From the sequence record OR493421.1: a DNA stretch of 64,000 nt. One strand, written 5' to 3'. The notes under the pieces are model-generated. The model was not told where the DNA came from, did no database searches, and saw nothing but the letters and a program-made list of their open reading frames with translations. Position numbers and translations under genes: made by a program. Numbering within the stretch: the first letter of the stretch is position 1; each line of letters starts with the position of its first letter. Shown here in pieces: positions 23,404-55,442 of the stretch.

Positions 23404-23423
23404 CATAATTTAGTACTGAAAAA
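23404..23423 (-). promoter_or_regulatory. phage promoter motif TTTTTCAGTACTAAATTATG
   Basis: 19/20 identical to 52119-52138; lies upstream of the 21.7-23.3 kb small-gene run. Confidence 0.65.
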
Positions 23424-34467: not shown

Positions 34468-34486
34468 AATTATAACGAAAAGTAAT

Positions 34487-51089: not shown

Positions 51090-52052
51090 TTAGTAGGACA
51101 TTCCGGAATCATCACCGCCGTTTCCAACCTGCTGGGCAGATTTAAAACGTTCGTTATTTTGGATCTCGATATCTTTAAGATCCTGAACCAGAACCAGGAT
51201 ATCTTTGATCGTCGCATCATGATCAAAGACCATGTGGAGATGTTCTATTCCAGCCGGGAAGTTAGTGCTGCCTTCCTGAATAACGCCGGTCGAACGGTAT
51301 GCCAGATTTTTAATATGGCTGCCGATGTCGTCCGCTTTACGATACAAACCAAATTCAGCAACCAGCCCTGGAGTAACGTTGTCCAGCTGAGTATCGGTCA
51401 AGAAGTCGATACGAGCAAGAGTAGGCGCCGCCTTGGTAACCTGGTTGTAATAGAACAGGTTCCGGATGTCTTGGAAATCGCTTTCTTCATGTTCGTCAGT
51501 TAAGAACAGGCTCAGGATATCAAGACGGCCGATGGCATATTTGTCGGCCAATCCGCGGCTGGGATATTTGGCGTTGTCCACGTAGTCGATGATAACCGGC
51601 ACGTTCAGATTGATGCGCTGGTTGTCCAGGCTTTCAAACGTTTTAACCGTGTTGTAGTTTTCCAGTTCAGAAGTCAGGTCACCTACGACCAACGCAATGA
51701 CCGGAACACCTTGAGAGAGGAGACGGTTGATCAGAGTCGGGCCGAATGTACTCCCGGTAGCGCCTGCCGCGTTCATGATGATCAGGTTGAAATCGCCCGG
51801 TTTATGTTTGGTCAAAATACTGTCAATAAACCCAGCGGCGATTTTACCGATCAGCTTACGTTCTTTACCACCGCCACGAGTTCCTTCAGGACGTTCGACC
51901 TTAAAGGCGTCGTTATGCGGTTTGTTGTTTTCACTGCTGTCCAGTCCAATGAACTGGGCTTTACGAATAAGCGTATTCGCACCGGTGGCAATCCATTTAG
52001 ACGCAATATTAATACCAGTACCGCCGCACGCGTAAACACGTAATGTACTCAT
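51090..52052 (-). CDS. phuZ: PhuZ phage tubulin
   Basis: YACGGTGINI T1 loop, RGGGKER, AAGATGS (tubulin signature variant), SDFQD T7 loop, short acidic tail; 320 aa. Confidence 0.9.
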   Translation of the reverse strand: MSTLRVYACGGTGINIASKWIATGANTLIRKAQFIGLDSSENNKPHNDAFKVERPEGTRGGGKERKLIGKIAAGFIDSILTKHKPGDFNLIIMNAAGATGSTFGPTLINRLLSQGVPVIALVVGDLTSELENYNTVKTFESLDNQRINLNVPVIIDYVDNAKYPSRGLADKYAIGRLDILSLFLTDEHEESDFQDIRNLFYYNQVTKAAPTLARIDFLTDTQLDNVTPGLVAEFGLYRKADDIGSHIKNLAYRSTGVIQEGSTNFPAGIEHLHMVFDHDATIKDILVLVQDLKDIEIQNNERFKSAQQVGNGGDDSGMSY

Positions 52053-52118: not shown

Positions 52119-52138
52119 CATAATTTAGAACTGAAAAA
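52119..52138 (-). promoter_or_regulatory. phage promoter motif upstream of phuZ
   Basis: TTTTTCAGTTCTAAATTATG, 19/20 identical to 23404-23423. Confidence 0.65.
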
Positions 52139-52184: not shown

Positions 52185-52215
52185 AAAAAGTCCAGTAGGG
52201 CCGAACCCTACTGGA
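52185..52215 (-). terminator. intrinsic terminator ending the ribozyme/ncRNA transcript
   Basis: minus TCCAGTAGGG-TTCGG-CCCTACTGGA then CTTTTTT. Confidence 0.85.
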
Positions 52216-52383
52216 AGGAATAAAAATTCATGGTAGAACTTTAATGATGATGTGGCGATATTCATGAGATGATGTGATGGATCACCACACGAATTGGGTT
52301 GGGGTACTTAAAGGCACGACTCTTCTTTCCCCCTAAGTCGTAACTACTTCCGGCCCTAAGGTAGGTTGAGCGCGTAGCTCGAC

Positions 52384-52572
52384 TTATTCTTTCAGCTTAA
52401 AGTTCGTAATGCTAAACGAGTTAACGTTAGTAGCTTTATGAACCTCAGTGCGCAAAACGTCAAAGATGCGATTAGCGTTAGTGAGCAAACAGTCGGAAGT
52501 AATTTCTCCGCTGTAAGTCGTAAACACAGAATTAGGTATTCGGTATCGCACGGTATACTGGTATGTGTACAT
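52384..52572 (-). CDS. 62-aa hypothetical protein embedded in structured RNA region
   Basis: AGGAGG RBS with normal spacing, clean ORF. Confidence 0.7.
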   Translation of the reverse strand: MYTYQYTVRYRIPNSVFTTYSGEITSDCLLTNANRIFDVLRTEVHKATNVNSFSITNFKLKE

Positions 52573-52589
52573 AACGAACCTCCTAAGAA

Positions 52590-53242
52590 TTTACCCCATT
52601 ATCTCCGACTCCTCACGAAGAGAGAGATAACAGGTTATACTCTTGGGGAAGTTAACACTCAACTCAAACAGAGAGGTTATAACAAAAGCAATGGTAAAAG
52701 GCAAACGAAACGCCGTGGCAGAGGTTTCCTACTCGCCCCTTGGTGAGCGACAAAGGACGAATAGGCAATCATACTGCCGTAAGATTGCGAGGTGTGACCG
52801 TCTGAGATTTTGGAGTTCCTACGAAGCTGAGCAAGCTTCCCTTCGGACTCGGAGAACGTCGGGGGTTGGCCTAACCCTCAGAGATATCTCTACAATAACT
52901 CACGTTACCCGAATACGAAAGGCTGATTACTCCGGCCGGTTTCTTACCCGTAGCTAACCCGGTTTATCGCGGAAACCCCGCATACCGGTATAATTCGCTA
53001 ATACGACTTGCAGCCCTATCTTGGGCAGCGTCGTTTGGGTTGGGAAGAAACCCGCCTGAACCAACTTTCCGGCAAGCGACCAGACACGCTTCTTTCTCTC
53101 CCACTTTCGGTTGCTTATTGTCCGCTCGTAGAGTGCGGCACTCCTAATCATGAAAGAACTTTTTAGTGCGGGCAGGCGAAGAAGCTGAAGACCTCGGGGA
53201 CCATTGCCCCTAACTGCCCGTTCAACGCTTAGGTTGAATTAT
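52590..53242 (-). ncRNA. candidate large structured ncRNA downstream of hammerhead cleavage site
   Basis: More than ten hairpins, several needing G-U pairs that work only on the minus strand, a GUGA GNRA loop and long-range helices; no credible ORF. Confidence 0.65.
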
Positions 53243-53310
53243 GACCTAATAAAATAGATTCATTAGGTTTCGTCTTGTTTAGCGTCGAAGACTCATCAGA
53301 TAACACGACG
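53238..53310 (-). ncRNA. type I hammerhead ribozyme
   Basis: minus: GUUAU-CUGAUGA-GUCUU(cgacgcuaaac)AAGAC-GAA-ACCUAAUGAA(ucuau)UUUAUUAGGU-C/AUAAU; all core nucleotides present, GUC cleavage triplet. Confidence 0.92.
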
Positions 53311-53561
53311 TGAAGAAAAACGTTAATCTATCCCATTGAACAAAAACTTGTCTGTCACAGGAGAATGGCCGTCGCTACATGGCTAAGGACAATGGGTCTA
53401 ATAAGATTAACGAATAATGGGGATTGAACCCCCTGAAAATCTCTAGCTACTTTGGCTATCTCGCTCGTGGTAAGGAGGTTCAAAGAGATGAGGTTGGGTC
53501 GCTAGTTAATCAACAGGGAGTCCAAAGATCTTTACTAATAACATCACTCTGTCGTTAGGAA

Positions 53562-54356
53562 TTACTCAGGGTCGATGAAATTCACCTCAAGGGTTTGATA
53601 ATCCCCAATGGGGTTACTCAATAAAATCTGTTCGCCAGTAAAATACATTTCTGGCCACCCGATGTAATCCAGCAGAGCGAAAACCAGTTTTAAATCAAGT
53701 GGGATATTCGTATTGTCTTCGCCGACAACCGTCATGTGTCCAATAAGATTACCCGTCACGCTTTTGTCGTAATCCCGTATGGCTTTACGCCAACCACTGA
53801 CGACGTTAGACGACAGCAGGCTAAAGGGGTTACTTGCGCTACGGTCTCCTGGGAGGATTCGAATATCGTTATTGTCTACCCGAGCACTGAACCGACGGTC
53901 TAATAAAATATTATTCAGCAGTTCGTTAGCGTAACCGATCCCATTAGCGTCGAGGTCGATTAAGCGGTAGATACTCGGTTTAATTAAATCCTGGTGAGTG
54001 ACGAAAACCTGAGTCCCTCGGCTAATCGCGTGCTTCCAGCCTAACTCCACCAACAACTCGTGGACCTTACGAATCATGTCTGGGTTTTCCATCACGTTGC
54101 GAACGGTCAGTCGGGTTCCTTCAGACATTTCCAGGACTAATAAAATCTTTTTAGTCGCTATAAGATATCCGGGATCTCGAGGGGTTGCATTCAACGCATC
54201 AGGTAATTCTTGTAACAGGGATTCGTAACGATCAACACTTGCTGAGTCTTGTGATTTAACGTGCTTGTTGTTTTTCCATGGGTTAGCTGGTTGCATAGGA
54301 TATCGCCTCTTAGGGATGTTTCGGGTTAACTTTCGAACGGATGGGGTATTTGCCAT
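53562..54356 (-). CDS. hypothetical protein upstream of ribozyme locus (start uncertain)
   Basis: 264-aa ORF. Confidence 0.65.
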   Translation of the reverse strand: MANTPSVRKLTRNIPKRRYPMQPANPWKNNKHVKSQDSASVDRYESLLQELPDALNATPRDPGYLIATKKILLVLEMSEGTRLTVRNVMENPDMIRKVHELLVELGWKHAISRGTQVFVTHQDLIKPSIYRLIDLDANGIGYANELLNNILLDRRFSARVDNNDIRILPGDRSASNPFSLLSSNVVSGWRKAIRDYDKSVTGNLIGHMTVVGEDNTNIPLDLKLVFALLDYIGWPEMYFTGEQILLSNPIGDYQTLEVNFIDPE

Positions 54357-54419
54357 CTGACAATTCGAGATCTCTGTCCTGCTCAGAAGATTATGCTCTC
54401 CGTAAGATATTACTTTGCG

Positions 54420-55120
54420 GTTAAATCTTCTTGTCTCGATAAATCTAACTTGCAGTAAAAATTAATTATCTTGATTAAAATATTTTTATTCAGTGAATAA
54501 TCCTTCCTGAGAACTCGATCAGAACACCCTCTAAAAATTCCTGTATCGATTTCTAAAACGTTTTTTCATCCGACTGATACGAATTCCTAGGTTGAGTATT
54601 AAATCTTCTCAAAATCATTCCGGTTAATATTTTTTACTCTGTGTGATTTTTTCTGGATAATCTCTCAGGTTAAATCTTGTATTTTTATAACCCCTTCTCT
54701 ATTACGCGTGCGCGTGCGCACACACGCGCTGGCGCGCGCCTAATGAATATAAATATATATAAATATATATTTATATATTTTTTATAAAAACAAACTAATA
54801 AAATATTTATAATAATTTATATTAATATATTTTTAATAAATTAAAAATATAAAACCAAATGAAAATATAATACTACGTATTATATTTGTTTTTTATATGC
54901 GTGCGGGCGTACGCACGCGTAATAAGGACCCCTAGGAAAAATTGGATTTTTTGAGTATTAAAATTTTAGATTTTTTTAGATTTAGATTTTTGAAAATTGG
55001 ATTTGGAAAATCAAAACACAGAAAAATAAAAAACCCAGAACCGGAATCGGTTTTAGATTATCTTTGAAAAATTAGAATATCCGCGCACGCGAAAAATATA
55101 AATATAAAATAGATTTGTAT
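54420..55120. other. putative replication origin or other cis-acting DNA element
   Basis: About 160-bp near-pure A/T core flanked by 13-bp inverted repeat TATTACGCGTGCG (54700-54712 / 54912-54924), mirrored AAATCT/AGATTT motifs; lies between divergent genes. Confidence 0.55.
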
Positions 55121-55442
55121 GTAAAAATTTACCAATGACCAAAATTCCGAAGAAAGAATTTTCGGAGCGCTTGGGATTGTATGTCGGATTGATTCTTGCT
55201 CGAGTGAGATCATGGCAACTCGCCTTCGAGGAATTTTTCCGGAGGCGAGGTTTTTTCTGTGGGGTGTTGTCTTACGGCACGGAGTATTTTATACGGGAAA
55301 TAAAACTCAAAAACGTACGGGATCGTAAACCCGTTGAGTTTTTAAATTCCCGCAGTGAAATATTATAACCGCCGAAACCCCAGAGTAAAAATTCTCAGTT
55401 GAATTTTTATCGAGACGGAAATTTCTCCAGTCCCGAAACTCA

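Follow-up and report, generated by a model that had tools for sequence, protein, structure and literature searches.

A conserved unit of hammerhead ribozyme, large RNA and small protein gene directly upstream of phuZ in jumbo phages

Directly upstream of the tubulin gene phuZ in a Miami-like Klebsiella jumbo phage (sequence record OR493421.1) lies a unit of about 1.4 kb which is real and conserved and which matches no described system. The stretch analysed, referred to here as the window, is 64,000 nucleotides (nt) of that record, and all coordinates are positions within it. On the minus strand, which carries every gene of the neighbourhood and all parts of the unit, the order is a leader RNA, a hammerhead ribozyme, a large RNA, a hairpin, an open reading frame (ORF) of 62 amino acids (ORF62), a trailer, a terminator and then phuZ (51090-52052). 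Because the hammerhead, the large RNA and the 62-residue protein are found together in three or more phage lineages that are distant from one another, the unit is probably an undescribed RNA-protein device. The reading that we favour, to which we would give a probability of roughly 0.45, is that of a ribozyme-trimmed RNA with two functions, a structured domain joined to the messenger RNA (mRNA) for its own small partner protein.

Results

Architecture and co-inheritance of the unit

The unit occupies the space between a gene for a protein of 264 amino acids, whose stop codon is at 53562, and the terminator, and the region is present in one copy in the window (Table 1). A preliminary description of the locus had proposed this architecture, and every part that it listed was found at its proposed place on the minus strand. 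ORF62 is the only gene-like ORF in the interval from the stop codon of the 264-residue gene to the start of phuZ. Cleavage by the ribozyme is predicted to give a 3' product of about 1.06 kb that carries both the structured domain and the well-initiated ORF62. It had also been claimed that phuZ is separate from the unit; the terminator and a promoter-like motif do intervene between the two, and the recurrence of that motif elsewhere in the window supports the separation.

In a comparison with GenBank, Klebsiella phage YC1 was 100% identical to the window over the 1.5-kb region, and six further records, all of Miami-like jumbo phages of about 252 kb, were 92.7-99.7% identical; the Miami-like sequences are referred to below as the Miami group. 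More distant relatives were recovered as contigs. A search with PhuZ of a large protein collection gave two intermediate relatives, with 74% and 49% identity, and on both contigs a homologue of the small protein (62/63 residues, 63% and 34% identity) was encoded directly upstream of phuZ. An exhaustive profile search added two more distant homologues of the small protein (E 3.6e-10 and 2.3e-6), the first of which is also directly upstream of a tubulin gene. The homologue has this position in contigs L022, L023 and L025-27, and L028, a contig of 606 bp, ends before any phuZ. The small protein adjoins phuZ on its upstream side in every lineage with recovered flanking DNA, and the hammerhead and long RNA are present wherever the upstream sequence suffices. 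The full arrangement, from the leader to the phuZ promoter region, is seen in L023 and L025 as in the Miami group, and the partial contigs L022 and L028 agree with it. These three lineages are approximately equidistant, their PhuZ proteins being 47-50% identical. Co-occurrence of hammerhead, long RNA and small ORF across relatives, which had been put forward as a test of the unit, was thus found in all three.

The gene on the 5' side of the unit differs in each lineage: it is the 264-residue gene in the window, a gene on the opposite strand in L023 and an unrelated gene for 146 amino acids in L025. Therefore the unit belongs with phuZ rather than with the 264-residue gene. Searches of IMG/VR and GTDB genomes with protein patterns and with two DNA patterns for the hammerhead found no relatives, and the JGI metagenomes yielded one further Miami-like genome only. 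One GenBank record, OR529409.1, is labelled Stenotrophomonas phage BUCTxx100 and is 99.6% identical to the Klebsiella phages over the region, an unusual host for near-identical genomes.

The hammerhead ribozyme

From its 5' flank, ACGUC, the hammerhead runs through stem I to CUGAUGA (53299-53293) and GAAA (53271-53268). Stem II has 5 bp (GUCUU/AAGAC), is closed by a G-C pair and carries an 11-nt loop, and stem III has 10 bp starting with A-U. The predicted cut follows the GUC triplet, after C53243, between 53243 and 53242. No Rfam family, hammerheads included, was reported at gathering score across the 64 kb. The best score at Rfam was obtained with RF00008 (HH3, in a type III alignment with mismatched stems), 23.7 bits with E 0.036 against a gathering score of 48.5, and RF03152 reached 19 bits against 56.3; in the relatives the Rfam hammerhead models gave no match at E <= 0.1.

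A covariance model, R1, was built from the Miami-group sequences with the structure of a type I hammerhead. It found one copy in the window, at 112 bits, and full-length matches in L023 (58.9 bits) and L025 (58.5 bits) with E of about 1e-12. The alignment contains 21 pairs in three helices, with 98.6% of the cells paired; six of these pairs, spread over stems I-III, change on both sides, values which none of 500 shuffles reached, and slid controls gave 0-2. The core nucleotides C3 U4 G5 A6 N7 G8 A9 and G12 A13 A14 are present in the window, L023 and L025, as are the pairs G10.1-C11.1 and A15.1-U16.1 and a cleavage site other than G, the triplet being GUC in the window and L023 and GUA in L025. 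The sole core variant seen was U7 to C, in contig L008, and position 7 is the one core position of a hammerhead that accepts any base. Furthermore, the sequences CGUC, 5' of stem I, and GACG, within loop II, do not vary among the three lineages, the rest of loop II differing, which suggests a pseudoknot between stem I and loop II, albeit a pairing without covariation. Perreault et al. 2011 (PMC3088659) described such a pseudoknot for about 40% of hammerheads. Since the core is intact and compensatory changes occur in all three stems, in lineages as distant as these, the hammerhead is accepted as real in its sequence and predicted structure despite the sub-threshold Rfam scores; it is a new and atypical representative of a known class.

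No second ribozyme was found with Rfam models at a permissive threshold between 52050 and 53700, and the earlier idea that the RNA might be circularised therefore gains no support. Neither does a further suggestion hold as a general role, that the ribozyme uncouples the RNA from the mRNA of the 264-residue gene, because the gene that precedes the unit in L023 is encoded on the opposite strand, and the unit has a phuZ-like promoter motif of its own there.

Slow evolution of the non-coding RNA

The window was compared with six diverged relatives, one by one. In the conserved non-coding blocks the divergence is 0-6% (0-3.9% for the hammerhead, 1.9-3.8% for the large domain, 2.3-3.4% for the hairpin before ORF62 and 1.1-5.7% for the trailer). 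Third codon positions differ by 21-25% for phuZ in four of the six relatives and by 28-36% for the 264-residue gene in all six, the flanking genes overall spanning 15-36%; for the leader block at 53544-53385 the comparison is 1.9-2.5% against 15-36% at the neighbouring third codon positions. Non-coding blocks thus evolve 6-15 times more slowly than adjacent third codon positions, and the constraint on about 0.85 kb of RNA is as tight as that on codon positions one and two of PhuZ. Three short hypervariable stretches separate the constrained blocks, a pattern in the aligned sequences that is typical of helices whose tips and linkers are free to vary. As judged from these alignments, the non-coding blocks are under purifying selection at the level of the RNA.

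The large domain, of about 0.58 kb, is predicted to fold considerably better than its shuffles, with z-scores of the minimum free energy (MFE) of -4.45 in the window, -6.4 in L023 and -6.2 in L028. None of 4227 Rfam families matched it at gathering score in the 64 kb, and at E <= 10 only chance-level matches were seen between 52050 and 53700. Models for GOLLD, ROOL, OLE, raiA, group I and II introns, RNase P, tmRNA, 6S RNA, retrons and other self-cleaving ribozymes gave no match, and a scan for tRNA and tmRNA found none. Across lineages the domain has a core made of a hairpin (53084-53068), the motif AAAGUUGG (53067-53060; consensus RAAGUUG) and a second hairpin, the latter differing by lineage (GGUU/AACC, GUUGA/UCAAC, GUAGG/CCUAC and GUAAC/GUUAU). 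A model, R2, recovers this core in L023 with 19.8 bits and E of about 9e-4; in L025 and L028 it was recognised by eye only. The consensus fold of the domain has many one-sided compatible changes and just three pairs changed on both sides.

A coding reading of the ORFs within the RNA (CPT_Miami_268/269 and KPN8_253/254) was rejected, as relatives have frameshifts or stops there and codon periodicity is missing. The calls or annotations on the opposite strand inside the RNA region, at L001:3408-3979 (CPT_Miami_268/269), L002:3475-3970 (KPN8_253/254) and L025:740-1297, are very likely spurious; the one in L025 runs across the hammerhead and across GC-rich hairpins. On the minus strand a direct repeat of 15 nt, AAAGUUCUNNCAUGA, has one copy in the large domain (53162-53148) and one in the trailer (52242-52228), and both are kept in the Miami group. 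In the spacer that follows the domain, a sigma-70-like promoter (TTGCCT-17-TATAAC) was considered and discarded; it is present only in the subgroup of the window, is not conserved and is absent from the list given by the scan that reported the terminator.

The small protein and the hairpin before its gene

The base of the hairpin before ORF62 carries unrelated but fully paired upper stems in the window, L022, L023, L025 and L028 (in the last as CCCGUUA...UAAUGUGGG), and its UAAUG starts 28-49 nt upstream of the ATG in the five lineages. The Shine-Dalgarno sequence of ORF62 is AGGAGG (52584-52579), 6 nt upstream of the ATG. In the predicted MFE structures of the window, L023 and L025 it is paired, in the window with a basal extension of the hairpin, AACUUCC. 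TAATGG was also considered as a general promoter motif and rejected, since it is not enriched before genes.

An alignment of 16 genomes and contigs shows ORF62 intact in every one, with 20 variable sites, of which 12 fall on third codon positions; it is a real gene and, with its AGGAGG, a well-initiated one, as the preliminary description had it. The protein has 13 variants at 90% identity or more. It has no match in Pfam, PHROGs, NCBIfam or the PDB sequences, nor has the 264-residue protein, and among GenBank phages neither has a homologue outside the Miami group. The AF2 model of the small protein is a beta-beta-alpha-beta fold with a predicted local distance difference test (pLDDT) score of 93.7. 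The nearest solved folds are those of the archaeal and eukaryotic ribosomal protein LX/eL20 (Foldseek E 0.03-0.7, template-modelling score 0.6-0.72, identity 5-18%), and among predicted viral structures small uncharacterised proteins of phages come closest. The resemblance of the model to LX/eL20 may be taken as a lead towards RNA binding, and not as evidence for it. The conserved base of the hairpin ahead of the start codon is a second hint that the protein may bind the RNA.

Leader and trailer

The leader begins with about 15 variable nucleotides past the stop codon of the 264-residue gene and is predicted to form two domains, L1, a long irregular hairpin (53525-53424), and L2 (53412-53321), with a conserved 9-bp base and a variable tip. 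Its consensus fold has one covarying pair, which is in L2 (UA/CG/UG). The trailer begins with a helix, T1 (52386-52334), which includes the stop codon of ORF62 and encloses CCUUAGGGCCGG; on its 3' side are a hairpin of a G-run and a C-run, T2 (52333-52301), and then a variable stretch. In L022 T1 shows, by hand alignment, a swap of U-A to A-U (GCUAC/GUAGU against GCAAC/GUUGU), a pair which is scored as broken in the alignment made by the tool. The motif CCUUAGGRCCG follows T1 in the window, L022 and L023. The preliminary description had called both leader and trailer structured. Both are conserved, and the trailer has the hand-aligned compensatory change between lineages; judged by folding energy alone, neither is clearly structured in the window, the z-scores being only -1.8 for the leader and -1.3 for the trailer (the L023 leader reaches -4.5).

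At the apex of the leader hairpin is a 13-nt loop carrying ACCUCCUUA, which corresponds, by the Escherichia coli sequence, to the 3' tail of 16S ribosomal RNA, the anti-Shine-Dalgarno; nine bases are identical. The same box is present in L023 (470-482) and, as GAUCACCUCCUU, in L028, there as a 12-nt match. The loop is predicted to be unpaired, with P = 0.88 in the window, 0.99 in L023 and 0.92 in L028. In L025 the 16S-like box is buried in a local hairpin.

Three further observations were made on the leader and trailer. At 53433-53419 on the minus strand the leader contains a terminator-like hairpin, GGGGG-UUCAAU-CCCC, which competes with the closing helix of L1; its tail has a longer U-run in five contigs, and it may be an attenuator. 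A G-rich motif, UAGGGGGAAAG ... GUACCCCAAC, is in the trailer in the window (52333-52301) and in L022, but in the leader in L025 (about 575-625). Finally, CUCUUUGAACCUCCU of the window leader is complementary (6 + 6 bp) to AGGGGGAAAGAAGAG of the trailer, and this may be a contact between the ends of the unit.

Transcription signals

The stem of the terminator is invariant in the Miami group, where the loop alone changes, in L014, and a terminator is at the equivalent place in L022, L023 and L025. The motif TTTTTCAGTNCTAAATTATG before phuZ (52138) has a second exact copy at 23423 and a copy with four mismatches at 34469, in all cases on the minus strand and before genes. The consensus of the three (52138-52119, 23423-23404 and 34469-34450) is approximately ATTTTTYAGYWCTAWATTAT, probably one promoter class of the phage. 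Late promoters reported for phiKZ end in TAT(G), as motifs of the ATTTTTYAGYWCTAWATTAT type do. No motif of this type was found before the RNA unit in the window, which may be transcribed there by read-through from the 264-residue gene or from a different class of promoter. In L023 and L025 a motif resembling the phuZ promoter of the respective phage precedes the leader; because of this the unit can have its own promoter.

Table 1. Parts of the unit and the adjoining promoter-like motif in the window
Feature	Position	Strand	Basis or remarks
Leader RNA	53312..53561	minus	block 53544-53385 slow-evolving; consensus fold
Apical loop AACCUCCUUACCA, 13 nt	53468..53480	minus	invariant in 13/13 leader variants
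Type I hammerhead	53232..53311	minus	complete core and covariation across three lineages
Large conserved RNA domain, predicted start of 5'-OH product	52705..53242	minus	slow evolution, MFE, ORFs broken in relatives
Hypervariable spacer	52660..52704	minus	19/45 columns vary among four genomes; 9-nt indel between subgroups
Hairpin before ORF62	52595..52634	minus	base CCUGUUA...UAAUGGG kept in every lineage, upper stem differs
62-residue protein gene (ORF62)	52572..52384	minus	intact in relatives, third-position bias
Structured trailer	52216..52386	minus	block 52383-52295 1-6% divergent; consensus fold
Intrinsic terminator	52185..52215 (stem-loop and U-tract 52215-52191)	minus	11-bp stem, 6 G-C pairs, 3-nt loop
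phuZ promoter-like motif TTTTTCAGTNCTAAATTATG	52119..52138	minus	outside the unit; conserved in Miami group

Regions at the equivalent place in other phages

Phages Aphrodite1 (L004:4503-4960), PDCC-1 (L005:4363-4960) and RisingSun (L006:4345-4870) have ORF-free regions of 0.45-0.6 kb, ended by a terminator, directly upstream of phuZ. In these phages, which are more distant from the window, the gaps fold far better than their shuffles (z = -5.4, -6.6 and -2.7, respectively). Homology to the RNA of the unit was looked for with nhmmer, R1 and R2 and none was detected; the gaps may be another family of RNA associated with phuZ.

Elsewhere in the window, the 1.1 kb at 54357-55442, between divergent genes, is AT-rich and has no ORF of 100 amino acids or more. 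Within it a run of alternating purine and pyrimidine G/C (about 54705-54741) gives way to simple repeats rich in TA (about 54745-54790), and it could be a control region or an origin.

Discussion

In the reading that we favour, a transcription unit bounded by a terminator has been retained next to phuZ, on its upstream side, by a clade of jumbo phages that encode PhuZ. The primary transcript would fold a type I hammerhead and cut itself after C53243, leaving a 5' piece that holds the structured leader, with the ribozyme at its end and a terminal 2',3'-cyclic phosphate, and a dual-function 3' piece of about 1.06 kb with a 5'-hydroxyl (5'-OH) end, on which the domain of about 0.58 kb, the spacer, the hairpin, ORF62, the structured 3' region and the terminator would follow one another. 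The task of the ribozyme would be to give the RNA a defined 5' end independently of any promoter. A 5'-OH end is a poor substrate for the 5'-end-dependent decay carried out by ribonuclease E, and the end so defined may also be stabilised. The large domain would be a functional RNA, and the small protein would be translated from the same molecule under the control of the hairpin, which together with its flanking bases would mask the ribosome-binding site. The protein may then bind the conserved hairpin, the large domain or both, leading to autoregulation and to the assembly of a small ribonucleoprotein.

Several lines of evidence point towards such a dual-function RNA: the compensatory pairs of the hammerhead, the purifying selection, the co-inheritance of the parts, the core recovered by R2 in L023, the conserved base of the hairpin, the paired Shine-Dalgarno sequence, the folding z-scores and the fold of the protein. 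There is also a precedent, in that the processing of long transcripts by phage hammerheads is documented (PMC3088659).

Other results weigh against this reading. The large domain of L023, at about 350 nt, has about half the length of that in the window. Substitutions within the Miami group favour the predicted fold of the domain only marginally, with 19 pair types kept and 20 broken, where slid controls gave 11-16 kept and 21-28 broken. The covariance model of the hairpin before ORF62, R3, is non-specific, terminator hairpins scoring equally. As for the protein, its matches to LX/eL20 are weak and concern a very simple fold, and its net charge is only about +2. Finally, the gaps of Aphrodite1, PDCC-1 and RisingSun contain neither a hammerhead nor a homologue of the small ORF; if their RNAs were related to that of the unit, the RNA could work without the protein.

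Two other explanations, both of which we think unlikely, have to be considered at some length. The non-coding part could be a long cis-regulatory 5' untranslated region (UTR) which only sets the timing and the amount of the 62-residue protein and has no function in trans. It would do so by masking the ribosome-binding site, by a cleavage that parts the ORF from the anti-Shine-Dalgarno loop and, possibly, by attenuation within the leader. The pairing of the Shine-Dalgarno sequence in the MFE structures of three lineages is as would be expected of such a region, as are the terminator-like hairpin of the leader, with a tail more U-rich in some variants, and the reduction of the large domain in L023. 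Furthermore, the leader loop is complementary to the start of the ORF over an unbroken stretch of 9 bp in the window, and over 9 bp in L025 as well, and the flanks change together (GAAC/GUUC against GGAC/GUCC). However, the energies of duplexes between the leader and the start region are the same as those of shuffled leaders (P = 0.2-0.3), so that a pairing of the anti-Shine-Dalgarno loop with the start region was not supported as significant, and in L025 the box is buried. In addition, 0.85 kb at 2-4% divergence far exceeds what known translational operators need, and the trailer, 3' of the ORF, is conserved as well.

Alternatively, the RNA and the ORF could be independent neighbours, the one a stand-alone non-coding RNA trimmed by the hammerhead, which might for instance use its 16S-like loop to act on translation in the host or of the phage, and the other an accessory of the phuZ region. 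The constant position of the small ORF beside phuZ would fit this, as would the conservation of a loop that is predicted to be single-stranded in three lineages, and structured regions without the ORF do exist at the equivalent place in Aphrodite1, PDCC-1 and RisingSun. These gaps, however, have no similarity to the RNA of the unit in sequence or by model; in the window neither a terminator nor a promoter motif of the phuZ type was found between the RNA and ORF62, and a conserved hairpin bridges the two in all lineages. We consider this improbable to about the same degree.

PhuZ is a member of the TubZ/tubulin superfamily, in which the plasmid and phage proteins are encoded downstream of a centromere and a small adaptor gene. 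The order of non-coding DNA, small gene and tubulin gene resembles tubC-tubR-tubZ, and the region could be a site acting as DNA (centromere-like, an origin or for packaging) and served by the tubulin in a partition module of the TubZRC type, with the 62-residue protein as a TubR-like adaptor. This is very improbable: the 1.5 kb contain no iterated repeats, only two short direct repeats of two copies each; the compensatory changes in the hammerhead stems, the hairpin before the ORF and T1 imply selection on a single-stranded transcript; the protein is modelled as beta-beta-alpha-beta and not as a winged helix; and a terminator and a promoter motif part ORF62 from phuZ. That the region is a decayed gene or the remnant of a mobile element (intron, retroelement or satellite) with a chance hammerhead is hardly credible, for although hammerheads are frequent in mobile and prophage contexts (PMC3088659) and GenBank records annotate ORFs inside the region, it evolves more slowly than the surrounding coding sequence, the opposite of decay, keeps its place beside phuZ across lineages, is single-copy in the window, matches no model of an intron, retron or other ribozyme, and has its annotated ORFs broken in relatives. 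A type III toxin-antitoxin system like ToxIN, in which an endoribonuclease toxin gene adjoins tandemly repeated antitoxin RNA, was also considered and rejected, there being no tandem repeats and no family match for the protein.

Parts of the unit resemble known systems. The T4 proteins gp32, gp43 and RegA and the coat protein hairpin of MS2 are examples of autogenous phage operators, and the unit likewise has a conserved RNA element at a ribosome-binding site, in five lineages; in the unit, however, binding by its own product is a guess, and the conserved RNA to which the hairpin belongs is far larger. SgrS/SgrT and RNAIII/delta-haemolysin are dual-function RNAs, each a regulator and an mRNA. 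As in the unit, a single transcript combines conserved structured non-coding RNA with a very small ORF that has a ribosome-binding site to itself, but the non-coding part of the unit is much larger, phage-encoded and, by prediction, trimmed by a ribozyme. GOLLD and ROOL are large structured non-coding RNAs associated with phages and prophages. Like them the RNA described here is hundreds of nucleotides long, highly conserved, free of ORFs, structured and carried by phages; unlike them, it matches none of their covariance models, occurs in nucleus-forming jumbo phages of Gram-negative hosts, would be cut by a hammerhead and has a small protein gene attached. LX/eL20 are small proteins that bind structured RNA and share the modelled fold of the 62-residue protein, but at such low identity, without a sequence-profile match and for so simple a fold the resemblance may be convergent.

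Hammerheads have been described in transcripts of phages and prophages, among them HHphage of the haloviruses HF1 and HF2, just before a helicase gene (PMC3088659). The ribozyme of the unit is like these in its catalytic core, three-stem junction, suggested CGUC/GACG pseudoknot and creation, as predicted, of a new 5' end before a gene in a long phage transcript. It is unlike them in scoring below the Rfam gathering threshold, in being single rather than one of a flanking pair and in lying within about 0.85 kb of conserved non-coding RNA instead of between ordinary genes, the gene starting 670 nt past the cut. No description was found in the literature of a hammerhead, or of an RNA both conserved and structured, next to the phuZ gene of a jumbo phage, and a 2026 review (PMC13282480) says only that phiKZ expresses non-coding RNAs. 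As far as their sequences tell, the large RNA and the 62-residue protein match no described family, and the whole falls among the ribozyme-processed phage transcripts and the large phage non-coding RNAs.

A bolder proposal, which we hold to be doubtful, is that the unit represents a new class of phage ribonucleoprotein. A large RNA trimmed by a hammerhead (the leader and the domain of about 0.58 kb, with about 0.85 kb constrained) would be assembled with a 62-residue protein made from the same molecule, would be kept beside the tubulin gene of nucleus-forming jumbo phages and would act either on translation, through the loop resembling the 16S tail, or on the system of PhuZ and the phage nucleus.

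The annotation in GenBank is corrected by these results, the ORFs called within the RNA being very likely spurious, and the motifs defined for the unit can be used for finding further members. Nucleus-forming jumbo phages are under intensive study, nearly all of it by way of their proteins. If the ribonucleoprotein is true, a large RNA machine would be added to the biology of these phages, and the orphan hammerheads of phages would be given a concrete job, that of setting the 5' end of a functional RNA.

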